DNA from: Dimorphilus gyrociliatus
Taxonomy: Eukaryota > Animalia > Annelida
Assembly (NCBI GenBank): GCA_904063045.1
Contig: CAJFCJ010000032.1
Span: 62,001 to 126,000, forward strand
DNA: 64,000 bases
Direction of reading: 5' to 3'
Each line of letters begins with the position of its first letter. Positions within the stretch are counted from its first letter, which is position 1. The notes under the pieces were generated by a model, which searched no databases, was not told where the DNA came from, and saw only the letters and a program-made list of their open reading frames with translations. Positions 7,851-52,800 of the stretch are shown here, in pieces. The translations under genes and the position numbers were made by a program.

Positions 7851-10800
7851 CTAATCGAATCGACAAGTTGCCGACATAACGAGAGTTTGCCTGAAGGGAG
7901 CATATGTAAATTGCTGAGTGTTCATAGGATATCTAAAGGTTTCTATTGGCCGGCGTCGACCAAACAGGATAAGAGCCTCTCGTCGAAATTTTGTTCCAGA
8001 GGCGAGGTAGAGAAAGAAATTTATAGAATTGTTTATGTAGAGTATCTGATTAGAAACGGCTTTGGCTATCTCATATCCCTTGTCCTTTAGCCAATACTGC
8101 TTTCCAATATACATGATAAAAGTAGGAGTCATGCATATTATGAATGCTACAGAGACGCTAATACACATAAGAGTCATTTGTGTCATGATGCGGGTCCTAT
8201 GATTACTTATGGACTGTTGCGCGGGAGCCTTATGCCTGTAAGGAAAGAAGAGAAAGAGGTAGAAAAAATATTATTCAATGAAATAGATAAAGTAGATAGA
8301 AGAACACGAAGTGATAAATTATGACTACTTTTTTAACTGAAGATGGCGTTAATTTTTCCCTTTTTTTTTGGAAAAAAAATTGCTTACTTGACAGTTTTTA
8401 GCGTCCAAACGATTAACAAATTACACGTAGCAATGATAAGAAGTGGTAGGATGACAGCGACGACAAATACAAAGTAGGGTCGAACTTTTTTGTTATATTC
8501 CGAAATTCTCGGAGTAGGATTACCGCAAGTTTTGATGATTGTCTTGTTAGATTTCTCGTCCCAGTCAATTTGTAGACCCCTTGTCCAAAAAACTTCAACA
8601 TTTTTCAAAAGTGAAATTATTAACACACTCATGCATACAGTCTTAATTCTTCTGGCGCTGCCGAATGTAGATTTGTCGAAAGGAAAACGAACAGCAAGGA
8701 ACCTAAGACCAGAGAAGGAACAAGTTCTTTTATTCCTTTCTTCGTAGTACTTTCTTCATTTTTGTCAATAATTTTATCAATATGACAAACTTTTAATAAA
8801 AATCAATATGTGATAGACTTTATTTAATTTAAAAAATTACATAATAACTATTATGTAACATGTATTATGAAATTAATAAATTAATTAAAGGAATATGCTG
8901 TTGTTATTGTGTTTCTTTATTAAACAAACTGGTTCCGTCTCTGGCCTGTCTATTGTAAATGCGACTAGAAACCATGTTGCTGTATCATTTACGCTATAAT
9001 GGCAAAATTTTTCAAGTTTGCAGGTTACGGAGTGTAGATTTTTGAAACTAACAATTGCACACGCTTCCAACCATTCTGGTACAATACCAAAAAACAGTAC
9101 CAAAAGATCGGCTGTCGCAATAAAACGTAGGTATAAACTTGTAGAAGTTTGACCCATTCTTTTCCTTCTCATTACCAGTAGTATAATAGTATTGCCGATT
9201 AGGCCTTGATGAACGAATTTTTAAAGATACTTTCTATTGTTTCATCTCATTAAATAATTTATACAATTTCGCCTACAATAACTATATATCTATTTTAAAG
9301 CTGTCTTGGAATAAGGAAGTGTAATTTGTAAAGATATTTTTTATAGCTTGTGTAAAGGAAGAATGTTGTAGGAGGGTGAGGGAATTAAAGAAAAATGTTA
9401 AGATATGAGATACAGGACAGTAAAGAAAGAAAGACTGAAACAAAAAGAGGGGAGAGGACAGAATGGTGGAGAAAGGGGAAAGACGTGGGGGGGGGTTCGA
9501 AGAATTAGAAAAGATGGCATTTTCTAATAAATAATTGAATAAAATTGAAATGAGAATGAAAAGAGAAGGGAAATGGGATAGAATGAAAAAGAGAAATAGA
9601 GAAATTTCTTTAAGTAACCTGTTTATTCCCCTAATACTTTGAAGTAAATAAGAAAAGGAGGAAATCGTATAGGGAAAAATAATGAAAACATTCTAAAAAA
9701 GAATTTGCTTAGTTCAAGAAATTTTCTACGTTTTTCTAATAAGAAATACCAATGAACATATTGTTAATAGATAGAAAAGGAGGAGATTGAAAATGTTGAT
9801 AATTTCGTATAAAAATTATCCTCCTACGCCCGATTTGTACGTAGTTGTTGCATGTATAATTGAATAGGAAAATATCATTAATACGAAATATGAAAGACTA
9901 TAGAATGAAAGTTTATGTAGAGGTAATTTCAATATTGTAAATATGTTAATAATTATTATTACGCTCTAATTGTAAAACAGTCTGTGCTTTCAGCTTAATT
10001 TAGATATGTGAAGGATTATTTAGAATCTATAGAAAAATTGTTTTTTAACCTTTAGAGCTTATCATTTGTTCGACCTATTTAATGTTTACATCAAGTATAT
10101 TTTTCTTGTTCTTTTTACTCTTTTCTCCCCTCTTTCCAAGTAGCTCCAAAATAGAAATTACATGGAATAAATGCACTGAATAACCTGTATAATAATTGAA
10201 ATTCTAATGGATGCATTCAACTTAAGCTGACAAAGTTTGTAGACAAAACCTGTTTTTGAGTATTTTCTTCTCAATAGAAACTAAATAATTAATTTAGAAA
10301 TGATAATTGAAAAGCGTAGAAGGAATGGTGTGATAATTATATAGAGATATATGTAAAAAACTAGAGATAAAAAGTTGAGAAGCCTAAAGAATTCGATGCT
10401 ATTCTTAAGTTGTTTAAATAAGATAATAACTATGGTTATTGTGCTAAAGAATAACATTAAACTACTATCTAAACTAGACAAAAGGAAAACAATACAGTAT
10501 TTATAATTAACGCCTATTCTGTCCTTAATTATTTAATATTTACACCACACTTTAATTGAAGATATCTTTTTTAAAAACGAAGAAAGAGAAAGAAAAATAA
10601 AGAAAAGTAATCTTTTTAATGTTTATCTTTTTCAATCAACTTCTTATCTCAATATTCTCAAAGGTATAAGATAGAAATTACTCTCAAAAGATGCTCTTTC
10701 ACTCTCTAACTCTTCCTAGATTCAACACCCTTTTCAATTTGAATAAATTTTAATTTTTTCTCGTCTTTTATCAATTTGTTATTTATTGTTTATTTTCGTA

Positions 10801-10943
10801 TGACCTAATTATTACAGCGTACTCCTTAAGAATTCTTTCATCTATATGCCTGTGAAGAAGATAATTGGTGCCAAATATTTCCAAAGTTCCCTTGACAAAC
10901 GCTTATCCCAGTCGTCCCGGGTTGTGTTTATACGGCTTTCCAT
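7851..10943 (-). CDS. Rhodopsin-class GPCR, FMRFamide/peptide-receptor-like family, 350 aa
   Basis: Exons 10943-10850, 9204-8946, 8702-8388 and 8235-7851 total 1053 nt in frame. TM1 is LWKYLAPIIFFTG|LIGN, TM2 is YLRFIATADLLVL, TM3 is FTIDR|FLAV, and TM7 is NNSINFFLYLASGTKFR. Introns 1 and 2 are GC-AG; intron 3 is GT-AG. Confidence 0.9.
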
Positions 10944-13900
10944 TATAATAGAGAATTATATTTAGAGCAGAGATTGCTCCGCGTTTCCTGCTTCCTCTCT
11001 TACCCCACCTGAATGTATTTGATTTCATTATCAGCAAGTTTCCGAATAAGTTTACCCCAGATAATTGCCAATAAGTTGATAGAATGGATACGATAAACAA
11101 GAGAGTAGTTAAAAGAGCGTAAAATATTTGAATATGAGTTTTAATTTGCTTAAAAAATTGAATAAATTAAAGTCAACTAATGATTGTAATTTAATCAAAT
11201 TGACAAGCTCAATTTCCAGTGAAAGACTCTTAGAAATAATATTTAGTTTGTTACTTATACAAGTGGTAATGTTGATGAAAAATACCGGTAATTAGCTTTA
11301 ATGTTACACTAAGATACTTCCGTTCATCTTCCAGCCAAGAGTATATACCCTTTATTTTCAATTAACAAGTTGATCATTTACGTCCACATTCACAATTGTT
11401 TACAAACATTTTAAAAGCAACGTGTAATGTTGGAATATGTGGCATCTGTTCCGTATTATTTATATATTTGTAATAAAAATATTCTACTTACTTCCAACAA
11501 TTGCTAAAATAACCTGAAAAAGACCTCACCTGCTTCTCTCATATATAAATGATATAGAAATTTATTGCAACTCCATCAATCGGAACCAAATTGAACAAGA
11601 CAGGCCATTATTTCCTCTTTAGGCCTATCGAATTATTTTTGTATGCTAATGAATTTTGAGTGCAAGCGTAAATTCATTAGAAGAAAATATAAAGAAGTTT
11701 AAAGGCGATTGATTCAAATAGAATATAACGTAAGAGAATTTCCTATAGACGCTTTTTATTTAGTGTGTATACAGTGCAGTAATTGCTTTTTGTTCTCTTC
11801 TAATAAATACCCAATTTGTCATTCGCCTATAAGAAACGATCGAAGATAGATAGATAGCCTATACAGACACATTGATATGTGCTATGATATGCATAACGTG
11901 CATTTCTCTAATCATTTATCCATTCCTTTTTCTCAATTATTAACAATTTTACTTACAAACCTTTTCTCTAATAATTTCGTAATCTTTCTCCTTTCCTTCT
12001 CTTCTGCTTTTTCGTGAGGAAAAAAGTTTTAAAAGTGTTATTCCTTCTGTGTTTCTCTTCTTTTCTTCTTTCTTTCTCTTTTCGAAAACGAAACAAAAAC
12101 TCAAAAGTAAATTTATCTTTTAATAATCGTAAGGAAGAATTTATTTAATGTCTTCTTCTCTTCTTTTCTCCAGTATTTCTCTCTTTCTCTATTGTTCTTC
12201 TTCTGGCCTCTAACTCGAGACGGCTGAAAATGTGGTAAACTAGCTACGTCTATCAAAGTTGCTTGGCCCACACTTTTATGACTATACTCAACTCTCGTCT
12301 AGATGTCGTTAGAAGCGTCGAAAAGCGAGTGAGCGAGTAAGTGCAGAGTTAGACAGAATGAGAGAAAAGAGGGAGAGAGGGATGCAGGAGAGAGAATTTT
12401 GAAGTGTGGGTAAATAGTAAAATAAAGAATATAGTATTTTATAGTAATACTAGTATCACTAATAGTAGAAGTGGAAAAAGAGAAGTAAAAAGAGGCAATA
12501 TATTTAATTGAACACTTTGGAAAAAACACTTAATGAAAAACACTTTATTGAAATTTAATTTGAATATACTTTTACGGATAATCTATAGAATATAGTTTAT
12601 AGGCCTAGAAAGGAAAAAAAATGTTTCTTATTTCATCTTTATGGGGTAAAGGAAAAGTTGAAAAGATGAAAAACATTTATTAAAAGTGGTTTTTTGCTAA
12701 AGAAGAAAGAAATTGCAATTTAACTTTGTACATATCGCTTATGATGTCAATAATAAATGTTTGAATATTGGAGTTAGGTCAACAAGGCGTAGAACTGTAC
12801 ACCAGGTAAATCGAATTATATAAATCTTAAAAATATCACGTGATCAAGTGAGAAATTTAGTAAATATTTGTAACAAATATATACTTTCGATCAACTTCAT
12901 GTGGTACTCGAATGACCTATAAATAAATCCCTTAATAAAACTGTCTCCAATCTGACATTTTTCCTTATCTTAGCAATGAATAGAAAAGTTGCAAGGACTT
13001 GCAATTATTTCAACTAGCTATGGCTATGGAGATGTTTGCTTTACAGATCCCAGCACTGATTTCTTAACTGTTAAGAGTTTGTTATTTTAACAGCGATTTG
13101 TATACGTGAAACGAGTATACTGTGTTTCTTCGCAGCTTTTGCCTCAAACTTTTCACAAATATTCTTTTTACTCTTTTTCTTCCTTCTCCTTCTCTCCTCC
13201 GACGATCCCGTTGCTAAATCAGTAAACTTTACTTTTGTCTTTTTCCCCAATCAAACAAATATCTCTGTAAAACAACTTTGTAGAATTTCCAAAAGTGTTT
13301 AAAGTAGTACGAATAAGAATCGGTAGATGGCGCATCTCGTCTGAAGCGGGTTTAAAAGAGATCCAAAAGAGAAAGAAGAAAAGTATAAAAATCGTAAACT
13401 GTTACTCCACCTAGTTCGGATAAAGATAATTGAAAACTAATCCACGTCTTCCGACGCTTATTAGAATTGTATTTTAAACATTTGAATGAAATAGTCAATT
13501 GGCTTCCTTTAAAAAATAAGGAAAATAATTAGAAAAGAAGTAAATTATAGAGGAAAGGAATAAATGAATTTTTAATTGGCATTAATTAATTAATTTCCGT
13601 CGATTGCCGAATGAGGTCACCTTAAATATTAAATAAATGAAGTTATTATTATTATGGGAATAGTTATCATAACGATTATGAGTAGAACAAAACTTGCGTT
13701 AAAGTCTAAGGAAGAAGAAAAGATAAAGAAAAAAGTTGATAAAAGTGATAAAAGATTCTCTCCTTAATGTTTTCAACACGAATCATCTATTCCCGTGTGT
13801 TTGCGTGCGAATGCGTGCTTAAGAGTTGAACAGTGCCATAGACTAAGAAATAGACTAATACGTAAACTGTATATAAAAACTATAAGAGAGGAAAAAAGAA

Positions 13901-14044
13901 ATCGTTAAGACTGATAAAAAGAATGAAAAAAGGAGAGAAGCAGGAGTTCAAAGAAATACTGGAAATGAGTAATAAAATAAAAAGAAAATGATACAGTTTT
14001 TGTGCATTCGTGCTCCTTTTTTATATTAATTTGTTTTTTTAATT

Positions 14045-14605
14045 TCATTTCTTTTCAACATTTTGCCAAAATCTTAGAAATTCGTCAAATTGTAAAACAC
14101 CATCCTTGTTTGTATCGTGTAAATTGAAGAGATTTCTTATATCATCGTCAGAGAAATTATAATCTTTGAGAACGTCTTTTGCCTCATCAAAACTTATACT
14201 TTGGGAGCCATCTTTGTCCATTAATTGAAATTTTTCGATTAGATCGTTCTTTCTACAAATGACGTAGTTGTGAAGGAAGCCGGTGAATTATTACAACTAT
14301 TCCTTCGAGTAGAATCTACTTACTTTTCGTGAACACGCCAATAGAACCAAATAAATTCTTCATAAGAGAGACGACCATCGTCATTAGTGTCGTATTGCTC
14401 TACTAATTTTCTAGTGCTCTCTTAATGAAAGAGAAATAGCTATATAACGCAATGAAAAGGCGAGGAATAGGAAAATAAGCGTTATTTCACCTGGAGTAAA
14501 CCCTAATTCTTTTTCTAAAATCTGTTGAGCTTCACCAACCGAAACGTAGCCGTTTTTATCCTTGTCATATTCTTGAAATTTACGAATTACTTCGTTCGCA
14601 TTCAT
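14045..14605 (-). CDS. Calmodulin-like protein with four EF hands, 139 aa
   Basis: Exons 14605-14491, 14420-14324 and 14252-14045 total 420 nt, with 70- and 71-bp GT-AG introns. Loops are DKDKNGYVSVGE, DTNDDGRLSYEE, DKDGSQSISFDE (G6 replaced by Q) and DTNKDGVLQFDE. Confidence 0.92.
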
Positions 14606-15155
14606 CGCTGCTTTCAGCCAAAATGCGCGCGATCGAAAAGCTTTTTATAGACATTTACATATCATTATCCCTCAACTACGGAAAATTCTTTTCCCTAATA
14701 AAATGGGTCATATTTTGTTTATTCAAAAGAAGTAATAAAAAACACACTTTTACATGTGCCATTACATTCATTTATTCAATAATATACTACTTAACTTTTC
14801 TTATAAAATCAATTTAATCATCTGTGGTCTGTTGATGACTGAAATCGTTCATTCATCGGCGCCTAACAGCAATTTTTGCTTTTTTAACTACAAAAATAAA
14901 CAAAGACTGCATTAAAAGTGCTTACCAATGCTATTTTTTATATTTCTTTCTTTCTTCTACAAACTAGTAGGTTATTAGCATAAAAAATTCTTCTAGTAGA
15001 GAAAAGGAAATAGATGACTTGCAATTTTAATGATAGGTTTTGAAAGTGTTTTAGAAGGTAAGGGGAGGAAAGATGGAGGGATGGAGAAGAGCGAAAATGA
15101 AAGAGAGATGAAGAAAGAAAGAAGGATAGATGGATGGATGATGCATTGGATAAAT

Positions 15156-15160
<5 letters not shown>

Positions 15161-15194: not shown

Positions 15195-15199
<5 letters not shown>

Positions 15200-17243: not shown

Positions 17244-18220
17244 ATGAACTCGCAGATACCAGATGATGTTCTTACTAGCCTCTTTACGGACTTTGCACTA
17301 GAGCACGAAGAAAAGCAGCAGAGCTACAACTTAAAGCATAGGCCAAATCATCAATCCCCTTCATTAATTCATAACGGCATTCAATCAACCGGAACATCAC
17401 CCTCTTCCAAGTACACCTTTTCGGAGCATTCCGATGACGTAGACACCTCTGCAGTAGTTGATGAACTAGTAAGAATTGGAGACGAACTTCCTGTAGCTGA
17501 TGAGGAATTAATTCTTCTTCCTGTTAGAGAATTGAATAGAAGGCTTCATGGATTATCAAAAGAGGTGAGAAACACGAGTTTTATTTTATATTTTGCAAAG
17601 TATTTGCTATTCTCTTCTTTCTTTCTCTCTCTCTCTCTTTCTCTTTCTACTTTCACGACTTAACATTTTCTTCTTTTAAAATCAAGAAAAATAAAAGAAA
17701 AGAAAACTATTTTAAAGCTTTTTTAATAGTATCGTAAAAAAAGTACGAAAAAGATCGAAAGAAAGAAAGAGAGAAAGAAAGATGAAATAAAAAAAAATAG
17801 TTAAAAAGAATTGTTTCTACTTAAAAAAAAGCAAATAATTAACATTTTAAAAGGGAAAACACAAGAGAAGAGAGAAAGTTGTATTTTATTTTTCTTTGGT
17901 TAAAAGAAGAGAATACTCCTCTCTAACTGAATCTTTACTCAACTGGGTTACTAAATATTTTCTTTATTGATCAGGTGGTTATTCGTATAAAGCAGAGGAG
18001 GAGAACCTTAAAAAATAGAGGTTACGCGCAACAGTGTCGAACGAAGAGGTTGCAACAGAGAGCCGACCTAGAAAAAGTTAATAAAGAATTACTTGAAAAA
18101 ATTAGTAATTTGAAAAAACAAATGTTGATATTGGCAAGAGAAAGAGATTTGTACAAAAGAGAATTGGAAAGGTTCAAATTAAATTCAACTCCATCTTCAC
18201 CAGATAGCGGAATATTTTGA
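17244..18220 (+). CDS. MAF: Large-Maf-type bZIP transcription factor (traffic jam/MafB-like), 188 aa
   Basis: Exons 17244-17564 and 17975-18220 total 567 nt. The extended homology region [22 protein letters not shown]|[25 protein letters not shown] is followed by a leucine zipper. The N-terminal LFTDFAL resembles the large-Maf N-terminal motif. Confidence 0.93.
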
Positions 18221-20799: not shown

Positions 20800-21293
20800 C
20801 TCCACAAGTATAAAATACCCAATATACTACTGTATATATGAGTAGAAATACAGTATACTGGAGTAGCAATACTGCACCAAGATGTACACTATTCAATTAT
20901 ATATACTATATATATCTATATATATATATATGTATAATTTATCTCATAGATCTTTAACCGCGACTGCAAAAGTATAGGAAAAATAAAAGCACTTAAAAAA
21001 AAACACAGTACGTCAGATAACATCCATGAAATTTTACTGTCTATTATTTTTGTCATATTTTAGTTTTTAATTTATAAATTTCCCTGCAGGTGACGCAAGC
21101 GTAGAAAACATTTTTGAATAAATTCTCTCATTAACATTAACACTTTGGTAAATTAATAAACTCTTTAGTTTGTTTGATTTTCTTGGGTTTTTTTTTGATT
21201 TGCGGTAGAAGAAAGGAAAAGAGGAAAAAAATTGTTTGTTTTGCTTTACCTTTCTCCTCATTATTTGCTTTATTGTTTTTCTTTGCTTTATGA

Positions 21294-24200
21294 CTAGGCA
21301 GTTACGGCTTGTTGGGTATGGTGGGATGAACAATAAAATTTCTTATGCGCGTCAAATGTCGCTTGGTAGGTAAAGGATATATCGCACTTGGAGCAATACT
21401 TGTCGCCCGGTGACGCCTTCGCTGATACAACTTCTGGTGAGGTGTCTCGTGGATCTTTCTCTCGTTCCGAATGCGTTTTGGAGTGCAAACGCATGCCTCG
21501 AAGTGTATTCCCTTTATAACCACAGATGGCGCATCGATAATTGACTTCCGGTGACGCCTGAGGGCAGTAATAGGTTTTGTGGGCATTTAATGTTGTTTCT
21601 GAGCTGAATGAAATGCAACAAGAAGCACAAGTAAATGTCATCTTAGGAGATTCTTTCTTGACATCGTTCTCCTCTTTCTTTTCTATAATAATTTCTTTTT
21701 TCTCTATTACCTCTTCTTCGATATCATCTTTTCTCATACTTAAATCTAATGGCTGATCATCTATCTGAGGTGTTTTAGACCTGATAATAAGAGGGGGTGG
21801 AAGAACAACTGGAAGTGGGTGGAATATGAGAGAAGGCGGAGGGGGGAGTGGCCGGCAAAAGTTCAGCTGATGACCTCGTAGACCTTCTTCAGTGCTGAAA
21901 GAGGCTTTGCAATCAGGACAAGAGAAATCTTCACCGCGATGAGCACAATAGAAGGTAGCATGAGCCTCGAGGGTTTTTGGACTGCTGAACTTGACACCGC
22001 ATCGGGCACAGGCGTAAATGAGTGCTGTTGAAAAGTTCTTAATTTACATTTGACGATAAAAGATTATTAACTAATAAATTGCGTCCGTTTTACAAAAGTA
22101 ATGTATAAACTATATATAAAGTATGTATAATCAGTATATGCAGTACCATATATAGTAAATTTAGATTACTACGTATGCTTGTACGTATAAATAAATACGT
22201 TTATAAGATTATTATCAATTCCTATTAAATGAGTACAATACAATCGAAAGAATACAATCAGAATAGTTAAATTTCGGAATTTGAACTTGAAGTTTAAGCA
22301 AAAAGTTTACGACTTGTTCAATCTTTAATTAAACAAGATTCTATTGAATTTCTTGTACATTCATCTAATTATTTAGGAGGGGATGCATCTTAAATTCAAA
22401 GCGAATATTTACTATTTAAGGACGGAGAATAAAACGATCTCTGGGTAATTTTTCACGAAATAAGGAGGGGTTGAAAGATTACTAGAGATTAGGACTAAAA
22501 AGACTCTAATAGATTCGCATGGATAAATTTACTTCATAAAAAAAAAGGAACAAGAGACAGCTTTTAGTATAAAGAAGCAAAACTTACGGAAAGACGCCTT
22601 GAGACGCTTCTTAACTGGTGGTGAGCTTTGCCTCTTAACAACCAATTCTTCTTTTTCATTTTCCTCTTCCCCTGCAAAAAAATCCGACTGCTATAACAAA
22701 TACAAGCAAAGATAAGCTGTAAGATAAGGCCGCCTGATAAAGGCGTTGTAAAGATAAGGCGCGTGTGCATCACTGATAACACGAACTAGGCAGCAGAGTT
22801 TGTTGATTTGTTTGTTTTCTCTTCCAGTACATAATTCTATAGGATGCTCGACCGCAAAATATCTATGATATTCTCTCCTTATTTGGAATCTACGGGTAGC
22901 TGAACAGGGTAATTTCCTGCTTCCGGTGCGGGGGAGTGCTTGTTTGATCAACGCGAATTGCCTGTTTTAATCAGATAACTAACGATAAGGACAATGTCGT
23001 CTCTTTATAGTTGAGATAAGGAAATTGATTCTGACTCATTGTTTGCAGATATAATGCAAGTCAACTTGTTTTTATTACATAACTGTAAATATTTTTGAAA
23101 ATCGATGAGAAAATCAAATTAAAACTTGGAACGTGATTTAAGAAAGAGATAGGAACGTTGCGAGCACAAAAACATCAAAGAAAGTCAGAATAAAGACTAG
23201 GGATATAAGTGGGGAGGGACGAGATGTCATCGTCAAATGATAAAGTATCATCGCCCCCACGCAGTCACTTTCTCCACACTATTCTCCTTTCCACCCCTCC
23301 CGCTGTTCCATTTACTTAAGGGAAGAAAACTTGATGATAAATTATGGAGGAAAGAAATGAGGGGAAGAGGGTAGAATAGACGAACACGGAGGGAGAGAGA
23401 TGAATATGGAGGCAGAGATACAGATAGATTGAGATAGAGAGAGAGAGCGAGAGAGAGAAAGAGAGAGGGGAGAGTGATGGAAAAGAAAAAATAATTATAA
23501 ATCAATCTAAAAATAATCAGTTAAGATAAAAAGCAAAATTTCAAATACAAAAAAAAATCAGTTTTAACATATTTTCTTGTTTTTTTAAAAAAAATAAAAA
23601 GACAAAAATAAACAATGTTTAGTTATGAAAAGTGGAGCATTATAGAGAGAGAGAGAGAAAGAGAGAGAGAGGAAGAGGGAGAGAGGAAGGAAGAAAGGAT
23701 AGGGAATGGGAGAAAAGTTAAATTACATTCACATTTCGTATTTTTGATTATCTGATTATCTTAGAGAAGAAAATTCCGATACAGAGTTTTTGCAATATAG
23801 TGTTACTACAAATGATAGAGTAGTTTTTTTTTGCTTGAAATTATCAATAAAAACACTAAAAATATCAGATAAGTATTCTAATTTCTTCACAAATCGTCCT
23901 AAATAATGATCTTGTAGAAGAGAATTCAACTTAATCTATATTTACACGAAAATAGAACATATTAACATCATGGGTGGTCGATCAAGAATTTATAGCACAA
24001 GTATCCTAACTGCCTTAGTCATCCTCTTTTTCCCTTCTAAACATGAATTAAAAGTTGAATACTTTAAATATATAGACATGATTCCATTCAAAAACTGTTT
24101 GCAATTGATAAGGAAAGAAGAACATCCATTTTTTATCAATATTGTTATTATTATCATTATTATTATCATTGTAGACATGTACAGGGAGAGAAACATCGGC

Positions 24201-28252: not shown

Positions 28253-31111
28253 TCAGAAACTTTTCAGAATGTGCCATTGGAGGACTGGCTGACGACACTT
28301 TTGAAACATTTCATTCCAATGCCTGACTTCCATGGGACCAGATCTGGCTCCTAGTACAATTTGACCAATTAATTCATTCCTACCGATTCTATCGTAATCC
28401 ATAACTGATATATCTAGAGAGGTTTGCCGTATTTTCTGATAGGGAACGTCGAATACGAACGTTTCGTTATAAATAGGATTTAAGTTTTTTTCCTTTATGA
28501 CAGTCTTCTTTTTTTCAACCCTTTTCCCGTCTTGAGTAAGCCATATTTTGACATAAGGATCCGAGAGACCATTCAAATCTTTTGATTTTAAATGTTTGGC
28601 CTATTTATTCGACCGTTAAACAGAATTTCATATTAGATATTTAGGTAGAATTATATAGAATATGTAATACATATTATGTTAATCGATAGACGCCTAAACT
28701 TATTACTCAACTGTAATAAATACTATACGTTGTCATATACAATTTATATTCTTTCATTTTTTTTATCCAATTTTTTAGTTGTGTTGACTAAAAGATCGCA
28801 CTAGAACATAAATTACTTTCAAATTACTATTTGATACGAATTGCTAGTAAATTTTCCATGCATTTCGCCTATTTTATTACCTCTGACGATGATGAAATCA
28901 CGCTCAAAACATTCACAAGAGAAATTAAAAATTTTTTATCCTATTCCACTCAAATTCCATTAACATAAACTCAAATATATATATTAATAATGTATCGGAA
29001 ATAGCCTTTCTTTATTGAGGACAGTGCTCTGTATACCAACTGCAAACCGATTATAGTCTAATATAGAAAAAAAAGGCAGGATAACAGAGGAACTAAAAGA
29101 AAGAAAATGAAGGCATTCATTGCCAAATAGAAAATGCTAGTCATTCGTTTGTCGAGTTCTCCCCTTATATCCGTCTAAAGGTCAACATTCGAGACCTTTA
29201 ATAATTGTTTTTTCTTCTTCAATAAGTATATTGAAGATAGTTTACTATTCATATTCTCCCTATTGACAAAGATTACAAGAGAGAAGTTGAAATCTTTTAA
29301 ATGCAATACTGTTAATGAAATTTGATGGTGACACATCAAATCGAAGTATTTCAGAGGGCTCTTAACTCTTAAGCTTTTCCTCTCCTAAAAAATTGTGTAT
29401 AAATTGCACTGGAAAATTTTGAATATATAAAATAAACGGAAGAGAGGAGAAGAACACAAAAGAGCGAGATAGAGAGAGTGAGACAGAGACAGAGACAGAG
29501 AAAGTAACATACAGAGAGAAAGAGAGATAGCTAGATAGACAGACAGACAGACAGGGAAGGAAAGAGAAAGGGAGAAGGAAGAGAGTTAATCTATGCGTGT
29601 TTTTGTACCTATGTGACTAATATACAATAAAGTGCAATGAAAACTAAAAAGGAAAGAAAAGGTGAAAGAGTTTAGAGTGCAACGATGGAGGCCAGGAAAT
29701 AGCTAGAGGAGAGAATCAACTTTCTAGAAATCGCATTTTCCGGGAAAAGTAGGTGCTCCCTTCCACAATATTCTCTAACAATTATCAGCATTGGATAACT
29801 TGGAATTTTCGCACAAGAGACAATAAGGCAAATAACTTGAGTATTTTCCTTGGAACAGCAAGCAATATGGATTATTTTAGAAAGATGAAAGGCAAAAGGA
29901 GCTTTAAAGAATCACTGGGAATATATAGTCTTCCCTTTATCCTCAATAGCTAACCACCAATAAATCTATGCGTATGAAAAACAATTTTTTACTAAATTGT
30001 TTGGAATTTTGTCGTGTCGCCTCCACCCTGCCTGCCTGCCCTCTCTCTCTCTTCCATTGTCCCACCGTCTACTCTATCTATCTATTTATCTATCTATCTC
30101 AATAAAAGTATAAATACAAAAGAGTATCGTTTGTACAAACGAAATTCCTATTTGTGAGCGGTCGATATAATGGGATAAAAATTGGGTTATTTCAGCTATA
30201 AACCCTAAAACGCAAGAGATTTATCATGATACTTTTTTTTCCTTTTCACGATTCCCTATTATCTGCGGAGCGTATGTTTTATTAGTTGTTATTTCGATTG
30301 TTTCTCTTCTTGTATACAACAGCAGACACTCTAGATAACATACTAACACCATTAGATAAAGAAAAATAATGTCATTTTTCCACTATAGCTTTTCATTGAA
30401 AATATTTTAGCTGAATGATGATTCATTGGGCAATGCTATATAAGTAAATATTATAGTAATAAATTAAATAAGGATGATATTTCTACTATGAAATTCTGTT
30501 TGCCTTGATAACAATGATGGTAAGGCTACCTTGAGCAGGTTGATAACAGAGCGAAAGAAGTAGCTCCCCTAATCTTCCAGAATGTCCTTTACAAGGCTGC
30601 AGATTTTTCCACATGGTCTTCCCTTCGGCTAAATTGACATCAGCCAGCGGCAGGGCTATCTCTCCAATTGGATCGTCTCTAGAAAATCTATCGTAATCGA
30701 GTACTTGCATATAGAGTATTCGATTTTGAATTTTTTGAAAGGGGAAACCTATATTTGTTTTTTAAAAGAAAAAATCAGGAAATTGAATTTATTATTGAAA
30801 TGATAAAGAGAAATGAATAAACCTTCAAAAGCGAAGCTCTCATTCCAATGGGGATTCAAATTTTTCCTTTTAATGTTTGTTTGCAGTTTGGTCTTTTTGT
30901 CGGGTAATAGGAGAACTTTGACATAGGGGTCGCTTGTTCCTGTAAAATCTTTTGCCGGTAAGCCTGTTGCTCTCATAACCTTCAAATTTAACGTATGGTC
31001 GTGGAAATCATAGCTGACTCTGAATTGGATTTTGCCCAAATTATCAACCACTTCCGCTTCTAGGACGGGTGGTTCCGGCATTTCAAAGGCTCCATTATCG
31101 GAAAAAAAATT
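28253..31111 (-). CDS. SYT7: Synaptotagmin-7-like, C2A and C2B exons (5' exons tentative, up to 41012)
   Basis: Exons 31111-30823, 30748-30504 and 28600-28253. C2A contains [21 protein letters not shown] and [16 protein letters not shown]; C2B contains IVIK|[20 protein letters not shown] and [13 protein letters not shown]. The last intron is GC-AG. Confidence 0.93.
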
Positions 31112-42649: not shown

Positions 42650-45543
42650 CTAAGGATAATCTTCGCATAATGTTTCATAAATAATAGGTAGATATTTGTC
42701 TAATTTAGCTGTTTCCAACGCATCTATCAAGACTTCAGTAGATGCACTTCTACCGGCATTTATTCTCCATTCTGCCAAAGCAGATTCGGCCTGCTTAACT
42801 TCGTTATCCGGGTATTTTCTTTCTATGGCCTTAATCCGGTTATTTACTTTGTTCGTACCCCCTTTTTCGATGGGAAGGGCTCTTGCCAAATGACGCCACT
42901 GGTCACCTAAATTACGACTTAGACGTTGAATACATGCTTGCAACGATTCACAATTTGACCTCATTGTAGGAAATTTCATTGATTCAGTTAATAAAATTGG
43001 AAGCTCATCTTCGCTTTCTTCCATACTTGTTTTTGAGGAATTTCTTCGTGGTGGAACGGGAGGAGCGATATTTACAGGACCCGTCGATAGTAAATCTTCA
43101 TCAATTGAGGCATATATGGGATCGTCGTTTGTGTCGTCATTAATATTTTTTATTTCATGCTGGACTATTTCTTTGAGAGTATTTTCCCCTACATTTTCCA
43201 AAAGCATCTCATTAATCGGCTCTGAGTAGGTTTCTTCTTTTTCTTCGCCTTGTCCTTGTTCCTTTAATTTCAAATTCCTTACTTCATCTCTGATTAATTG
43301 TCTAACAGTACGATATTTTGCCGATTTTGAGAATTCCGGGCTCGTACTGATTTGTCTATGAAAATGAAGAGAATAGATGGTATACAATACAGCATATACT
43401 CAGCATATTAAATAGTGAAACTGGCCATTCCGTGACAATGCCCAGGTAACAAACTGTTGAATATTTAAAAGGTGAAATTGCCCTTCTACAACATGGAAAA
43501 CCTGAGATTTTAGGTGAAAATGAATAATATCGATAGTGTATTAAAAGGTAAGAAATCTAAAATGTCTACGTTATTCTTTACTACATGTTTAGCTATTGTT
43601 GCAATAAATAGTAATACATTTATCATGTACACATGCACTGGGAATCTTTGTAACTACCTGTGCAAAGGCACTTTGAAACACCTTGCCCACTTACCAAGCC
43701 ACTTAAGTTTGATATTTTCAGTAGTGAAAATATCTCTTCTTTCGCATCTGACAATCGTAAAAACTTTGTTTCCAAGGGAATTACTTCGTTGTCAGTGTAA
43801 GTTCTCTTATTCCCCACTTTAGTTTTATCCTCTATTTTTTTTGGTTATAATGCCTACAATATTAGTATTGTCAGCTGAAGCTCTATCTAAAGATGGAACA
43901 GTTATTAAGACAGTAGTCTGCCTAACGTTTAAAATTTTCCAATCAATTTATATTTTACCTACCATTTTTACCTTTCTAAAATACAAATTCTTTTATTATT
44001 AGGTAATTCCACCTTATAATTAGTGAACAGCATCTTACTTAGACATTGCTGAAGAGTGTCCAGTTCGCCTAATTGACAGTATTATATATATATACAGTAT
44101 ACATATATATATATATATATATACTGTATATGTATTTATATATATATAAAGCATACTATATATATATATATATAATACATTACAGAAAGGAGAGATTTGA
44201 TTATAATGAAAAGGAAATGTAATATAATATAAAACAAATAGCTATTTCAATAACACAATATAAATTTCTATTAGAGATTATACCTATCTTTTTTACTGAA
44301 CGCTCGATAACTCGGCTCGGATGCTCTTCGACTCTTTTCTAATGTCCTTTCGTTCAATTCAGCTTCAATGAGAACGTCTGGTACATTCTGTCGGTCTGTT
44401 AAAAAATTCGCTATTGTTCCAAAACCATTGACTAATGCGCGAAATGCCGCTGTTGCCCCATCTTCATCTCTAGCGTCACATATCGCTCCTTTTTCACTAA
44501 CAAGTGTTTTGACTAGTTGAAAATGTCCTCCGCAACTAGCAAAATGAAGAGGTCGCCATCCACATTTATCCCTATCCTCTATGTCTACTTGAAAGACTTC
44601 AACAAGAAGAACTACAGTGCTAATATGACCACCGAATGAAGCAAGATGAAGTAAACCAATATCAGAATTTTTCAATCTGATATTCAGCAGAGCTTCATCG
44701 TTAGTAAGAAGTGTTGTAAGTAGATCATCGTAGCCTCAAGAGAGAAATAGAAATAAAAATACAGGTTATTTGTATTTGATTGATTTGTCTAATTAATAAT
44801 GGAACATGTAGTTATTTGTTATAACAACGCTACTGACAGTACAACGGGAGATGGAGAAGGATAGAGATATGCAAGGGAAGAGGGGGAGGGTGTAGGTGAT
44901 GAAATGAAAAATTTAAATTCAATAAACAAACTACAATAACAACAATAAAACTGAACCTTGACATAGTATTTTAAAACAGAACTTTTTATGAATGAAATCT
45001 CTTATTATACTTGATATTGCTTATTTATATTGCATATACCTAAAAAAATCTATATGGAGTATACACACATTTGTTTATTAATGAATGGGGGAAAATATAG
45101 ATTGCATCTATTTCTAAGGTAATATACTATTACTTAATATATTGAACAAAAAGGATTCAATTACTCTTTATCTACTACGCAGTGAAAGATTGGTTTTTGT
45201 CTAAATCACTATATGATCAGTATTACATTTAAAGTGAAAAAAATCGATTTTTCTCTCTCACTTTTCATTCTCCTACAGATTAATTTTTACCTTTATAAGC
45301 AGCTAAATGAGTAGAAGTTAACGATTCAATGTTACATGTTTGCAGCTTTAGTACAATTTCACTTCCTTTCAGCAAAGAGTCTTTTAGAGTAAGCAGACGT
45401 ACTTCTTCACTAAGTATAGATCTTGTATAATCAGTTGTCCAGTAGTTAAGGTATTTCTCTAATTGATTTCTATCGTTAGTTAAAACAATTAAAAATATCT
45501 GATAAACATCTTTAGAAAATTTTTCCTCTTTAGCCGTTGCCAT
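42650..45543 (-). CDS. Ankyrin-repeat and death-domain protein, 469 aa
   Basis: Exons 45543-45291, 44734-44284 and 43355-42650 total 1410 nt in frame, GT-AG. ANK motifs are THLAAYKG|YDDLL, LLHLASFGGH, GWRPLHFASCGGH and GATAAFRALVNG. The C-terminal death domain is LSRNLGDQWRHLARAL...QAESALAEWR...ASTEVLIDALETAKL. Confidence 0.88.
43560..43945 (-). mobile_element. Degenerate C-terminal fragment of a Ginger/KRBA2-SCAND3-like DDE integrase (transposon remnant)
   Basis: The open frame TTVLITVPSLDRASADNTNIVGII...SGQGVSKCLCTGSYKDSQCMC* resembles, from memory, the V-P-x-x-D-R-x-x-x-D-x-x-N-I-x-G-V-I and G-Q-G-F-x-K-C-x-C-x-G...C-x-C motifs of these integrases. There is an upstream in-frame stop, no catalytic core and no TIRs seen. 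Confidence 0.55.
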
Positions 45544-46108
45544 TTTTATAGGGGTTCATTAAATTTCCAACAAGAAAAGAGATTTTAACAACCGACCATT
45601 TTTTCTTTCACAACTAACGCCGCCTGTAGGACTCATATGAACATGACCAGTCATAAAATACCTTCGTATTGAATAGGTTAACATTTCACCAAAACATTCT
45701 ATAACTAAGGGCATCAGTGGCGACATCTAGTGTCTTCATAAAAATGTATATTGATAATTCTTTTATTACACTACTTATCAATTGAACGTAAATAAAAATG
45801 AAAAGAGTATAATAGCAAATTTTTCGATGTTGTCATATTTTTAAATATAAAGGTATTCAGATAAGTACATACTATTAGCCAATTAAAGAAGAGTACACTT
45901 TTCATTCGACCGCAAGTGTGAGAGAAAGACAAGAGAAGAGTAGAGAAGGAAAGAACAGAAATAAATTCATATAGGATAAAGGAGGAACAGTGTAAAAAAA
46001 CAGGTGTAACAAAAGAACACAATCATTTAGACTTTTATTTAAAAACTTGAACTGTACAATACTGCTGCAGATATATATCAGCCAAAACAGAAATAGAGAA
46101 GAGAGAGG

Positions 46109-46140
<32 letters not shown>

Positions 46141-47113
46141 TTATACGAGAAATTGCATATAATACTTCGTTTTACTTTCTCATTAAATCTACAACCATAA
46201 CAATGTAAAAAGTTGAATGAAGAAGAAAGCAAAAATGAGTTTATATTAGTTGACATGTGAAGTAATTACTGTAAAAAGTATTTATATTATTTTCTATGCT
46301 GTATAAACTTTGTTTATTTGTTTACATTCGATAGTCAAAATGATATGTGTAATTTTGCTTTTTGTATTTTTATTTAAGGCATAGAATCTTCTTTGAAGAG
46401 TAGTTTGTATGGAAATTTTCATCATATTCTTTTATAGAATTAAGTCTTTTTTCTTCCTAGAACAAATGATGAGAATATTTAAATACTGTTTGTCATACGT
46501 ATTATATATAAATGTTAATATATATATTTATATATATATATATATATATAAATACGTATATACTATGTATATATGATTATATTAATATAGATCATGTTTG
46601 CAGCAGTTTCCACCTTCATCTCCTCCTCGCCCTAGTATTCGATGTGAAAAAATATGCTATTTCAATAACTTATTTTATTAATAGATTACTATTAGTTTCT
46701 TTTTGCTAAACAGAGTTATTTTCTTAAAGATGACTTTTTTTCAATTTCATATCTCACTGTATTTTTTGATTTATCTGTTTTTATCTTGATTACTTATTTT
46801 CGTTTTTTTCCTGAATGGAATAAATTTTTTATCCCCATCAGCAGACAGTTTGTAGACGAGGGAAATGTCAAGAATTCGTGAAAGGTTAATAGATATTTGG
46901 GCAGCGACAAAAGATCCAATCTTTAAGACGTTCAATTTCTTTCTTTTTCTCCCTCCAATTTTATTCTCTTTACTTGTTTCTGTTGTTTTTGCATTTGTTG
47001 TTGTTGTTGCTATTATTTTAAGCCTTTATAGATTTTTTTTAAGACATTGTTTTTCTTTCATAAAAGCATACAAAGATGTCTGAAAAGGCTGATCGATTCG
47101 ACAAGTATCGTGA

Positions 47114-47820
47114 TTAAACGTTGTCCTCTGTATCGAATTTCCCCGAATTTGACCTAGATATGGACCGACTACTAGCCCCGCTAAGACCACTAAAGCTTCC
47201 ATTCAGTCCAGTATTTACAGGCATAAGATACATCTTGTTGTTAGGATTTCCTTTTTTTAATTTATATTTCCAAACTGACCAGGATTTTTTGCAATTGTCA
47301 TTCAAATGAACTAGATTCTCCGCCTCGGGATTTCTAATAAGGTGATTGGGAGCACCATGCCTACTAATAGCGCAAGTAGAGTAAGTAACAGACCTACGAT
47401 CACCAATCATTGCCGAATCCGTAGGCCGACTATAGCAACACCGGCACAAAGTCTCTTTGAACGCTTCCCTATATTTCTTCGACATGAGATTATAAAGAAT
47501 AGGGTTGACTGTAGATGAGACGTAATACAGAATACCAGAAGTATAGAAAAGGATGTCGTTGAATATGCTATATTTTTCAGAAATGTTTTCATTACTGACA
47601 TAAATAGCCAGCAATCTTTGAGTATGAAAGGGAGCCCAGCAAATAAAGAAGGCGACAACTACTGCAACTGTAAGGATGAAAGAAAGAGGATAAGAATTCA
47701 ATTAAAAAATGCAGTATAATAATAATAGTGAAAGTAAAGAGAATAAAGTGAGAAGCTATAGCTATATGTTTTTCCCTTGACAAACAGCTTAACAGTAGTT
47801 ATATATACGTGAATATACTG

Positions 47821-47855
<35 letters not shown>

Positions 47856-49838
47856 GTATGTCTGCATCAGTGCATTTCAATATCATACGTTAAACGAATA
47901 GCAGATTATTTGTGTTTATTTCATCCTTCCGGTTGGATGCATATCATTGAATCTCCTATGCTCTTCTTTATTAGAAGATGAGATCAACCCATTAATACAA
48001 CTTAGTCGGTATTAAAGCTAAGTTTGCAAATAGATAGATATATAGAATAATTTAATATACAATTGTATATCAATATATATATCTATATATATGATATAAG
48101 AAAGCGTATATTGTGGATAAATACTATGCAATTTAACATTAATGAACTTGTAGTAATATCATTTGTTGATAATCTGAATATACTATACATATATATTGGT
48201 ATATATTGAATTTTATAAATATATCTTCTCCTTTTTCTTCCAGGGTAAAACCTAGATTTTTTTCTCTTCTCCCTTTTTCTCTCTAGCTTTTCTTTCCATC
48301 CCTTAAATATTTTGCTAATATACTCAAGCATCATCAAAAATTTCTAATAGGCCTTAAGATGGCGCATAGTATGTTCATTAGATAGAACTTGGAAATAGAC
48401 TGTGGTCACGTTCGGGGATTTTTTTAAGATGTTAACCATAATTTTCCTAATGGTATAGGAATAAATTCAACTGCTGACGTCAAGGAAAAGATTTGTCTTA
48501 GAAAAACTTGCCTTTATTTATTGAGTAAATAGAAAACGAATGCCGTTACACGATTATAATTGTTAGATTAGGTCGTATTTGAAAAAGCAGAAGGTTGGAA
48601 AGTTTGCGTAAACGAGCTATCGATTCTCCAGAATATAATGGGGACAGTGATAAATGACAGCAGCTGTACAGATATAATACTAACAAAGTGTATATTATAG
48701 AGATATTAGAGTGCAGGGTTGCGGCAAGGGATGCTCATAAATAGAATGCATTAAATGCAACGAATATCATTCGTAAAAAAAGAAGTTGATAGAATGTTTC
48801 ATACTTTTACTTAAGTTAATAGTTTTTGCAGTTGTCGGAGGGGATATCAGCAGTAAAGATGAAGAAATTTATGACTAAAACTATACTCTTTATATATATA
48901 CAGTATATACATATAAAGATATATATTGCGCTTATAATATATATATATATTATACTGTATCTTGTATATGATGATATATGTATATACTTGCTGTAATATA
49001 TACTATACGGTATATCGTATATAATGGGAATAATGGTAATAATAATAGATAAAATTATTATTATTAACTTTACCTTAGTACTATTATACACTATAGATAT
49101 TATATACATCTCTTCTCTTGTAGAAACTCTACTTTTACGCATAAAACATACCCTGTAGTTTTTTTTTGCAAACCTTGCAATGTACTCAATAAATGTGTTG
49201 TCTTATGAACTTTCCGCTTCTAAACTGTAAAATTTATAGTATACTTTATGTACAAATGTATACGCATACACCATATTGTATTTATACAAATCTCTTTTCC
49301 TTCCATTACCATATTTTACTTTACAACCTCACTTAATATCAATAAATTCTCTATATTTTTCTATGGTAATTTACAATATGCGACATGTCTGCTTCTAAAT
49401 ACTTTACTTGATATAGTATACAATATACTATATTTGGAGTTTACAGTAGTAGACTTTTTACGACTTACCTACTCGAAGATTACTTGCCTATGTATCTTTT
49501 CGGTGAATGTGGTATTTACACTCAGAATTTAGTTACTTGCTATAATTCTTTTTTATTACCACTAATCAGTCGTTTATTGTAAATTTTTCCGGTTTTTTCT
49601 TCCACCCCCTTCACCCATTTCACCCTAAAAACTATGCAGCATCGAATTAGACGCTGTTAAGAAATAGGAAAAGACTTGAAGAATTTATCAGATCAACCTT
49701 TAACACCGTCTGGATCAAAATTAATGCTGTACAACGTATTCGTATTTAGCGTGCTTTTTTATTGAAACGTTTTCTTTGGAAAATCTCTTCCTATCTTTCT
49801 TTCTCTCTGTCTTTCTAGCTCTCTATCTATCTATCTAT

Positions 49839-49873
<35 letters not shown>

Positions 49874-52800
49874 GTATTTATAGCATACTGCATATATATA
49901 ATTCTTATTAAGATACTCATATTTATAGTTTTTAAGCTAGTACAAATCATGATTTATGGTCTAAAGATAGGTTTACAAAATTGGAACGAGAGAGTAGGAT
50001 TGGGGCAAGAGGGTGTGAAATTTGGTCCTAAGCTGACCACTTCGACATTTATCACCTCAAGAGTATTTATTTGCTTTTTACTTATAATAAATAGCAAACA
50101 CCTGCTACAATATCCAGATATTTTTGGAAGGGAAAAAAATTGGGCAAATGCTGTTTTTTCGATGGAAATTAAAAGAGATCAACACGACTAGACTGATGAA
50201 GAAGATGATGAGGAAAAAGGAAGATAAGGAGAAACGGAAGAGAGCAAAATATAAAAATGTAAGATTATCTAATGAATTATTTGGTAAAAGGCAGCTGTTA
50301 GGCGCCTACTCATCTACTTGGTATGCACGACCACAGACAGTATGAGCAATTTGGTTAATCCAAGGTGACATGGTCATAATTTTTAACGAAATAATACCAT
50401 AGATCGTCTTGGCTCAGGGGTACAATCACTGTCTTTTATTCTTCGTTTGTCTATATATTTAAGCTCAGCGATTGATCTTAAAACAACATTAAAGAAAAAG
50501 AAAGGCTTTTGGTAAGAATTAATAGTTCTATCCCTTAACAAATAACAGTAGAATTATGATTATTGCTTTTATCACCTTTTTTCTTTTCCCCTTATAATAG
50601 TATTTATCTAACAAAAAAAAACATTATATAATAAATTCCTTCCTCTTACTTTATTAATTGAATAAATTAGGCTAAGGATGGGGGAAAAGAAGAGAAGAGC
50701 GAAGTAGGGAGAGAGAAGAGACGAAGGGATGGTAAGGGGGAGAAGGGCGTAAAAATAAGCACTTTTCCTATCATGCGTATTATGAAAGCATTCAATTTTC
50801 TAATGGGAAACTCTATGCAATAGGATGGAAGATTTGAGGCTCAGCAAATGTGATTAGTACACATTAGCATTGCGATATTTTCTAATTTTTTATGTGTGTC
50901 TTTTTTCTTTTCCTTCATTCGACCTTGTCTATATGCGTCGTCAGTAAATTAAAGAAAATAAAAGACTATCCTCTCTTTCACTTTGTTTGGCTCTAAAGAG
51001 TTGAAAAGTCTACTTACCTAGCATATTTAGTACAGACTTTCTAGAATGGGCTAGAGAGTTGTCCTTAGTCTGTGAAGATTCGTTGCGATTCAAAGTCTTA
51101 CTGCTCTTTCTTAGAGTCATTCCAATCTTGATGTACAACAAACTGATTACCGTCATGGGTATGATAAAGAGAAAGAAGGCGGTGAACTGGAAGACTATTC
51201 TACTCTTTGCCCAAAATTTGTTTGGAATATTGCATACTAATGAATCCTTTGCATCATTATTTTTATACTGCACATAATAAAAAGTTCTATTATTTTCGCA
51301 GAAATGAAATCGATCTTCCGTAAAACACTAATAGATCCAAAGATATGAATTATTTTTAAATGATTGCTTAAAAAATTTATGGATAGATATTTTATAAATA
51401 GTATTGTCAATACTTTATATATACTGTGCGATATATATACTGTAAATACATATATATATATATATACACAATATGCTTTATAGACTGCAATTTTACAGTT
51501 TAGTATTTCAGTTGATTTTAAAAATTTACTGTTTTTTACTTTTTACGAAATATGATAGATTGATTGACTGATTATAACTTTGGTTCAAATACTAATTCAT
51601 TGGTTTATTTATTATATAACCCGTCGATCTATATCTAGATCGGTTCCATCTCTGCCTTGTAATCATAGGATATGGTAAAGCTGTCAGCGATGCAGTAAGC
51701 CATATGCAAACTATAATTTTCAAAGAGCGAGACGGTCTGGAGACGGAATGAGCTTTTATCGGGTAACAAATGGCCAGAAAACGTTCTACAGTAAAGGCGG
51801 TTATGGTTAGGATGGATGCAGATGACGTCATTTCCGAAACGAACGTCTTGAGTATACAGAAAGGTTCACCAAATATCCAAGGATAGAAGCTCCAAATTCC
51901 ATAGAGTTCCGGTGGAAGGCCTGCAAAATGTATTTTTCATTTATTTACATAGTTTCGTCCCTATCAGTAAGGATAAAATAAATAGACTAGAACAACTATC
52001 GTAGAAGGATGAGGAATTTTACCCTCATTGAGTCCTCATAGTGCACTAACGAATTACAATTCTGACTCGTACTATACTCATTTTCCTAACCATCAGAATC
52101 AATGATCCATTGACTTTTGACGGAATCAGTTTTTCCTTTCTTATATTGTTACATAATTAGATAAGAGAGAATGGAAGAATCGCGTTGGTCTAAGATAGTA
52201 ATACTTAAGATTGTTTGTATATTTAAAGGAACTACGTTGGTTGTTAGAAAGAACCTGAGAATATATAGAGGAATTGTTTCTTGTATAGAACGAGAACTAC
52301 AGCATATTTTATACATTCTATAATCTTATTTATTTACGTGTGATTTAAGTGCCTTAATAGATAAGACTCTGAAATATGTTGGATTATAACCCCGAGCTAG
52401 TGTTGGAGATAGTAGAAGAGTATAATTATGCAACCTTTCAACCGTATTCTCTAGTAGTTAATCGTTAATTAGTTGTGACGCTACGAGACTGAAATACAAA
52501 TTTTACGCTTTAATTTTACTCGAATAAAGTTACATTACGCCTATAAATATTGAATAATTTATTAGTTACAAATTAAAGCAGGAAATTCTGGTTAAATCGC
52601 TTACTTAGCTAAAATAAACTTATCCTATAAATATAAATCTTTTGCGTTTCTTTCACCTTTATAATATTTCACCTCTATCTTACATGCATCTTTAAGTAAG
52701 TTATTTCTGTATTCTTATTAAATTATCATATGTATTATGTAATAGTATATTAGACTATTGCATAATCAGCATATTTTTTTTACCATCTTTGCTCTTTTCT

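Follow-up and report, generated by a model that had tools for sequence, protein, structure and literature searches.

Introns with GC-AG borders make up about 1% of animal introns, and an ordinary GC donor is a near-perfect AG/GCAAGT (here and below, a slash marks a splice border or the place of a splice junction). In zebrafish and other teleosts, a helix between (AC)n and (GT)n repeats bridges certain introns, brings the correct splice sites together and makes U2AF2 dispensable (Lin et al., 2016; PMC4691745). Introns that derive from transposons and combine inverted ends with non-canonical borders are known as introner elements in Amoebophrya (PMC7789003) and occur also in Fritillaria borealis, Polarella and Micromonas (reviewed in PMC11282704). 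Moreover, DNA transposons can be excised from mRNA independently of the spliceosome by a process called SOS splicing (Zhao et al., 2025; PMC12779559). Here we describe four GC-AG introns of the annelid Dimorphilus gyrociliatus, in which a weak GC donor, a helix between the intron ends and a lineage-specific position coincide. They lie within a 64-kb, AT-rich stretch of DNA (about 31% G+C; assembly GCA_904063045.1, contig CAJFCJ010000032.1, positions 62,001 to 126,000 of the forward strand), which is called the window hereafter and whose first letter is position 1. The genome paper of D. gyrociliatus describes canonical features and a conservative compaction and makes no mention of GC-AG or non-canonical introns, and we found no literature linking Dimorphilus to introners or to non-canonical introns, nor any on end-paired introns of this kind in Dimorphilus or another annelid.

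Helices between the ends of the GC-AG introns

A sequence-only reading of the window had named four GC donors on the minus strand, CAG/GCATAT (G+1 at 10849), CAG/GCCAGA (8945), AAG/GCAAAC (30503) and AAG/GCAGAG (51655), and all four are present as claimed. They open the introns I1 and I2 of a gene for a G protein-coupled receptor (GPCR-A), I4 of a synaptotagmin-7 (Syt7) gene and I5 of a second receptor gene (GPCR-C), that is, of three nerve-signalling genes which are all encoded on the minus strand. The same reading had called these donors non-compensated, and this proved to be wrong: every GC intron possesses a strong helix that runs from its 5' end to a site just upstream of the 3' splice site, and the compensation probably lies in RNA structure rather than in complementarity to U1.

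The helices, which were determined by end pairing with RNAduplex and scored against shuffled sequences, comprise 19-25 bp with energies of -20 to -27 kcal/mol and z-scores of -3.8 to -6.0, and they pair the start of the intron, from +1 to +8 onward, with an arm that ends 3-17 nt before the 3' AG. In folds of the whole introns I2 and I5 the helix is kept both in the minimum free energy and in the centroid structure (z -4.8 for I2 and -4.9 for I5). When all pairs of 45-mers with matching spacing on either strand of the window serve as the reference, with low-complexity tracts left in, the helices of I1, I2, I4 and I5 rank at 0.018, 0.0024, 0.014 and 0.0019, respectively.

This feature is restricted to the GC introns. 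Sixteen introns of the window were modelled with confidence, four GC and 12 GT. None of the 12 GT-AG introns, which span 56-5932 nt, has such a helix: their end pairings reach -2.5 to -13.1 kcal/mol with z-scores of -0.6 to +1.3, and the two classes are separated completely (Mann-Whitney p = 0.001, 4 vs 10 introns). Eight of these GT controls are fixed by RNA or homology, namely 8387-8236, 30822-30749, 57852-51921, 51017-47668, 45290-44735, 44283-43356, the Maf intron 17565-17974 and the FOG intron 27154-22025.

Searches for helices that start from the DNA and not from gene models are of little use in this window. In a window-wide inverted-repeat scan, (GA)n/(CT)n and (TA)n tracts prevailed, and a pairing scan anchored at AG/G returned hundreds of chance pairs at kilobase distances, such that the finding of further hairpin introns needs gene models. 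The listing of frame-compatible GT..AG pairs proved uninformative in DNA as AT-rich as that of the window. A near-perfect inverted repeat of 15-16 nt, GATGACTAAGGCAGTTA and TAACTGCCTAGTCAT, was noted on the minus strand at 24007-24023 and about 21285-21300 (dG, the pairing free energy, of about -28 kcal/mol). One copy lies inside the large FOG intron and the other around the stop codon in the last exon of FOG; the repeat may be due to chance, as chance pairs abound at such a distance.

The poor U1 match that had been ascribed to the GC donors is borne out. Compared with CAG/GTAAGT they agree at 4-6 of the nine positions, while the GT donors agree at 5-8, most of them at 7-8. The GC donors are mostly off consensus at positions +4 to +6 and depart from the near-perfect AG/GCAAGT, and most GT donors are canonical in look (GTAAGT, GTGAGT, GTAAGC). 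The same genes also contain canonical GT donors of ordinary appearance, so there is no need to assume that 5' splice-site recognition has been rewired in general, as had been suggested for this lineage. The donors GCATAT, GCCAGA, GCAAAC and GCAGAG do not conform to the U12-type donor /RTATCCTT either, TATCC being present in none of them. The polypyrimidine tracts of I4 and I5 are poor. The excess of GC-AG introns likewise stands, with a probability of 6e-5 for at least four among the 22 introns of the earlier list at a background of 1%; the local GC-AG frequency in the window amounts to 18-25%. By contrast, intron length, which had been put forward to divide the GC from the short GT introns, fails as a class divider, because the window also contains GT-AG introns of 410, 556, 928, 3350, 5130 and 5932 nt.

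Splice junctions and gene models

The transcript evidence consists of Logan contigs of an independent run from 2017 (X1), for which no library type is recorded. From contig 1 (1905 nt, depth 67) the segment 8703-8945 is missing; it is 243 nt long and has GC..AG ends after a permitted shift of one base. The same contig skips also the adjoining GT-AG intron 8236-8387 and therefore represents mRNA, and no unspliced depth over I2 was seen among the X1 contigs. Contig 3 (depth 38) joins 9204 to 10850 and thereby skips 9205-10849 (1645 nt, GC..AG after a shift of two bases). The short side of this joint measures 26 nt, less than the 31 nt required for bridging; such a k-1 overlap is to be expected where a de Bruijn graph (k = 31) branches, and the second arm here is the unspliced contig 2. 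The support of contig 3 for the I1 junction is good but not perfect. Neither at 8945 nor at 10849 do the independent X1 contigs differ from the assembly by a single letter, so the C at +2 of I1 and I2 is not an assembly error. Contig 2 (1201 nt, 9177-10377; depth 16, vs 38 for the spliced contig 3) leads from exon 2 into I1 without being spliced and ends at 10377, well before it would reach the donor at 10849. Partial intron retention or a transcript that starts inside the intron could account for it, and it is the only hint at the regulatory use that had been proposed for weak GC donors.

A check of the four junctions by RNA, as the sequence-only reading had proposed, thus succeeded in part: the skips at 8945 and 10849 are seen in transcript contigs, and the junctions at 30503 and 51655 rest on homology. 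At 30503, the upstream exon of 81 amino acids (aa) matches human Syt7 (6ank_A) over its full length, at residues 95-175, and the downstream exon covers residues 176-288, which gives a gapless join at 175/176; the stretch from the last conserved codon to the in-frame stop contains no GT. At 51655, 17 residues lie between the blocks that align with NMUR2, and this spacing equals that of human NMUR2 exactly. The spliced product reads ITR/TFYY, and the orthologues P0039-P0041 have exactly TRTFYY at this place in uninterrupted genomic open reading frames (ORFs; ALPYP..TRTFYY). More widely, the orthologues P0038-P0042 read TRT[FY][YH]Y across the junction and P0037 reads TRTVYM.

For 51655, a GT alternative was considered, with a donor 42 nt downstream (CGG/GTTATA) and the acceptor ggaag/AT. 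It adds about 21 residues which are absent from all orthologues, and it was rejected because the GC-AG junction keeps the NMUR2 spacing, matches the orthologues and leaves complete spliced frames. All four GC introns possess MAG/G...AG borders, and the X1 contigs show a single, precise, in-frame junction.

GPCR-A is a divergent Srw-like receptor of the rhodopsin class whose joined exons give a spliced frame of 350 aa with one terminal stop; its exon 3 found no match in a search of the PDB, and the sole match in a word search with its exon 2 was the unspliced ORF of a relative, contig L006, which is described below. The Syt7 gene is an orthologue of synaptotagmin-7, its best solved relative being the Syt7 chain 6ank_A (E = 3e-64). 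GPCR-C resembles neuromedin-U and neurotensin receptors, and its joined exons encode 441 aa with one terminal stop. Within the window there is no tRNA or Rfam family and hence no snRNA (small nuclear RNA) gene. The coordinates of the genes, introns and helix arms are collected in Table 1.

Table 1. Genes with GC-AG introns in the window, the four introns and the arms of their terminal helices. Offsets with a plus sign count from the first base of the intron, those with a minus sign from its 3' end; dG in kcal/mol.
Feature	Position	Strand	Description
GPCR-A gene	7851..10943	minus	coding exons 10943-10850, 9204-8946, 8702-8388, 8235-7851
I1, GPCR-A	9205..10849	minus	GC-AG, 1645 nt, phase 1, within transmembrane segment 1 (FFTG/LIGN); skipped by transcript contig
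I1 5' arm	10814..10842	minus	+8 to +36; 25 pairs, dG -20.2, z -4.4 to -4.6
I1 3' arm	9208..9237	minus	-33 to -4, ends 3 nt before 3' AG
I2, GPCR-A	8703..8945	minus	GC-AG, 243 nt, phase 2, within DRF motif (TIDR/FLAV); skipped by transcript contig
I2 5' arm	8921..8945	minus	+1 to +25, GC donor included; 22 pairs, dG -26.8, z -5.6 to -5.9
I2 3' arm	8708..8732	minus	-30 to -6, pyrimidine-rich, ends 5 nt before 3' end
Synaptotagmin-7 gene, C2A-C2B part	28253..31090	minus	exons ~31090-30823, 30748-30504, 28600-28253
I4, synaptotagmin-7	28601..30503	minus	GC-AG, 1903 nt, phase 0 (VIK/AKHL); fixed by homology
I4 5' arm	30482..30501	minus	+3 to +22; 19 pairs, 15 contiguous, dG -21.7, z -5.4 to -6.0
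I4 3' arm	28618..28637	minus	-37 to -18, ends 17 nt before 3' end
GPCR-C gene	47114..58090	minus	exons 58090-57853, 51920-51656, 51286-51018, 47667-47114
I5, GPCR-C	51287..51655	minus	GC-AG, 369 nt, phase 2 (ITR/TFYY); fixed by homology
I5 5' arm	51631..51655	minus	+1 to +25, GC donor included; 24 pairs, dG -26.4, z -3.8 to -4.4
I5 3' arm	51298..51328	minus	-42 to -12, ends 11 nt before 3' end

Intron positions, origin and conservation

The positions of the four GC introns are lineage-specific, as relatives or a paralogue lack an intron at each of them, and comparable GT introns sit at conserved positions. The Syt7 genes of the annelid Lamellibrachia satsuma and of the orthonectid Intoshia linei are uninterrupted at the I4 site (...MK/CRDLKSKDING...), and they share with D. 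gyrociliatus the GT intron of C2A in the same place and phase. Both relatives contain a GT-AG phase-1 intron 13 codons downstream of the I4 site, in the D codon of DPYVK, which D. gyrociliatus lacks. At the I5 site, the GPCR-C orthologues are uninterrupted in genomic contigs, and they have the acceptor of the first D. gyrociliatus intron in common. For I1, the GPCR-A paralogue P0044 reads APVIFFTGLIGN straight through the site. This paralogue is a single ORF of 359 codons on another contig of GCA_904063045.1 (L007:4001-5080), is 82% identical in exon 2, and represents either the ancestral intronless state or a retrocopy; two more distant GPCR-A relatives are uninterrupted ORFs too. Given these lineage-specific positions, the GC-hairpin introns look like recent gains.

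Three further observations concern the structure of these genes. In 28560-28600, compared with L001:19108-20826 and L002:854-1339, the GC-hairpin intron of Syt7 lies 40 nt upstream of the place of the missing DPYVK intron, and apparently one intron was lost here and another gained close by, or an intron was relocated. Lamellibrachia Syt7 possesses an extra intron of about 8.9 kb (L001:10147-19034) where the exon 30748-30504 is continuous in D. gyrociliatus (between its residues 55 and 57), which fits intron loss during genome compaction. In the GPCR-C orthologue at L003:2760-2775, the exon end is apparently ...TTCTTTCAG/GCTCGTACC, where the donor may be GC, or a GT four bases on.

As to the source of the introns, duplications of the target site were limited to 2-4 nt (AG, AGG, AGGC) at both borders, which the splice consensus alone would give and which GT introns show alike. 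The 64-kb window holds no second copy of any of the four introns, and neither I1 nor I4 contains an ORF of at least 70 aa. However distinct otherwise, I2 and I5, which belong to unrelated receptor genes, both start with G(C)CAGAGAYGGAACC (minus strand, 8931-8943 and 51642-51654); homology between them does not extend beyond the first ~14 nt, and the shared start has no other occurrence in the window. It could be the terminal repeat of one element family, or a convergence, as both starts pair with pyrimidine tracts. Presumably CAGAGAYGGAACC resembles hAT-type terminal repeats, which we take as a lead and not as a test.

A view on the maintenance of donor and helix is given by a relative that has I2 as well. 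L006, a genomic contig from Logan (SRR23372228), encodes an exon protein that is 99% identical to that of D. gyrociliatus, with DNA identities of 76-91% over the aligned blocks. Its I2 is 309 nt long, vs 243 nt, and the interior has diverged through numerous substitutions and several indels. With CAG/GCCAGAGACGGAA as the donor, GC is kept, and 13 perfect pairs extend from G+1, a G.U pair having become G-C and the single mismatch C-G. With a dG of -27.9 kcal/mol and a z-score of -6.8, the helix of the relative is better than that of D. gyrociliatus. Furthermore, the arm stands as far from the 3' AG as in D. gyrociliatus, yet the tail sequence is different (TCTTAG vs CAATAG). The intron that follows I2 in L006 has a GT donor, and at I1 the 3' arm of L006, AATTCTTTCATC, is the perfect complement of the 5' arm of D. 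gyrociliatus, GATGAAAGAATT. The I2 pattern points to selection on the arms, under which it would be expected.

Explanations and known systems

We consider it probable that the GC-AG introns form a distinct, recently gained class that is recognised in dependence on its structure and is removed by the U2-type spliceosome. A helix of 19-25 bp would bring the splice sites within 5-19 unpaired nt of each other, whether the intron measures 243 or 1903 nt, and this bridge would define and pair the sites early. It would make up for the poor U1 complementarity, for a base other than U at +2 and, in two cases, for the poor polypyrimidine tract, before being opened for catalysis. The introns themselves would descend from inserted DNA with inverted ends. 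The data show the junctions, the helices and their confinement to the GC introns, the lineage-specific positions, and the retention of donor plus helix in one relative. The need of the helix for splicing, the cutting by the spliceosome and the origin from such insertions are what we infer; the major spliceosome is favoured because MAG, G at +1 and the 3' AG are kept and because each intron has one precise in-frame junction.

Several points weigh against this account. In I2 and I5 the helix lies over positions +1 to +8, which would normally inhibit the binding of U1 and U6, so that an opening of the helix or a bypass of U1 would be required. The GT control set counts only 12 introns, and four of these (three of a PH-domain gene and one of an HMG gene) derive from reading frames only. 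RNA proof extends to two of the four junctions, one of them by a 26-nt overlap, and the apparent conservation of the arms comes from a single intron of a single relative. Finally, the inverted ends and the odd donors could both have been inherited from an inserted element without aiding splicing. On this last view the hairpins are relics of insertions of non-autonomous DNA transposons, such as introners or miniature inverted-repeat transposable elements (MITEs), which brought along their terminal inverted repeats and GC ends; the GC donors would then be tolerated, and the pairing would have no role in splicing. The lineage-specific positions of all four introns, the location of the inverted ends at the very termini, the common start CAGAGAYGGAACC of I2 and I5, and the existence of such introns in Amoebophrya, Fritillaria and Micromonas (PMC7789003, PMC11282704) all fit with relics. 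However, target-site duplications beyond 2-4 nt of AGG(C) and a second intron copy in the window are absent, and I2 and I5 are unrelated past the first ~14 nt. The relic reading is weakened by L006, in which the arms of I2 are kept and even improved amid a decayed interior, and we regard it as unlikely.

More improbable still is a removal that is directed by structure but independent of the spliceosome, akin to SOS splicing (AKAP17A, CAAP1 and the RTCB ligase) or to the nonconventional introns of euglenids, and fixed as a constitutive process. It could draw on the fact that paired inverted ends trigger SOS splicing in C. elegans and in human cells (PMC12779559), and it would accommodate the poor polypyrimidine tracts of I4 and I5 as well as the helices of I2 and I5, which cover the donor in a way that is awkward for U1 and U6. 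Yet SOS splicing uses variable junctions, which leave indels and are seldom GU-AG-like, whereas each intron here has one precise in-frame junction at MAG/G...AG, with the reservation that contigs can hide rare variants, and the same borders recur in L006. Hardly any weight is left for the view that ordinary GC-AG introns cluster here by chance, or that an artefact arose from an error of the assembly at +2, from a pseudogene or from a faulty exon model that hides a GT donor. In its favour, no other non-canonical class is as common in animals as GC-AG (PMC7072748), and 51655 offered a possible GT alternative 42 nt downstream. However, an independent run gives the same bases together with spliced forms, the GC donor is kept in the relative, the reading frames are complete, the orthologues match the GC-AG product at 51655, four or more GC-AG introns among 22 have a probability of 6e-5 at 1%, and a rare structural feature is common to all four and absent from the GT introns.

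A bolder idea, to which we give as little credence as to relics, goes beyond the account of U2-type removal that we favour: the introns might represent a second mode of intron recognition, in which the end helix and not U1 pairing defines the 5' splice site and any base is accepted at +2. Such a mode would be either independent of U1 or a domesticated, RTCB-dependent relative of SOS splicing, and it would turn inserts with inverted ends into constitutive introns of conserved neuronal genes.

The four introns bear on two open questions, namely how new introns originate in animals and how far RNA structure, as against snRNA pairing, determines the choice of splice sites. They form a small, experimentally tractable set, two members of which are backed by transcripts. 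Every member combines a weak donor other than GT with a helix between its ends and a position specific to the lineage, and the GT-AG introns of the same genes serve as internal controls. If the helix is needed, this would be a natural system for studying U1-poor splicing that is defined by structure, and the conversion of inserted DNA into an intron could be watched in an animal with an otherwise conservative genome. In practical terms, gene predictors that are limited to GT-AG or consensus GC-AG introns will mis-model such genes in D. gyrociliatus.

Among the systems that are already described, ordinary U2-type GC-AG introns agree with those of Dimorphilus in the GC at +1/+2, the 3' AG and the MAG of the upstream exon; the Dimorphilus introns differ in a consensus match of 4-6/9, in the terminal helix and in a local frequency of 18-25%. 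Nonconventional introns of euglenids likewise have paired ends that join their borders, variable lengths and lineage-specific gains (PMC12501133, PMC11282704), but they lack G...AG borders, pair over a short stretch only (+4 to +6 with -8 to -6) and are released as circles by an unknown machinery. SOS splicing has in common the paired inverted terminal repeats within an mRNA, and this in animals; however, it is imprecise, mostly out of frame and not GU-AG-like, while removal in Dimorphilus is single, in frame and at AG/G...AG. Like the Dimorphilus introns, the transposon-derived ones have inverted repeats at their ends (8-20 nt or more), donors other than GT, positions peculiar to a species, and short direct repeats that span the boundaries. 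They occur as repeated families with recognisable target-site duplications and in thousands, whereas the 64 kb of Dimorphilus contain no repeated copies or clear duplications and the borders stay G...AG. The closest animal precedent is given by the bridged introns of zebrafish, in which complementary segments lie at opposite boundaries of introns in nuclear genes of an animal. In the fish, the arms are dinucleotide repeats, the borders are GT-AG and the helix replaces U2AF2; in Dimorphilus, the arms are unique and non-repetitive and begin directly at the donor or beside it, GC donors of poor consensus are used, and the introns occupy new positions.

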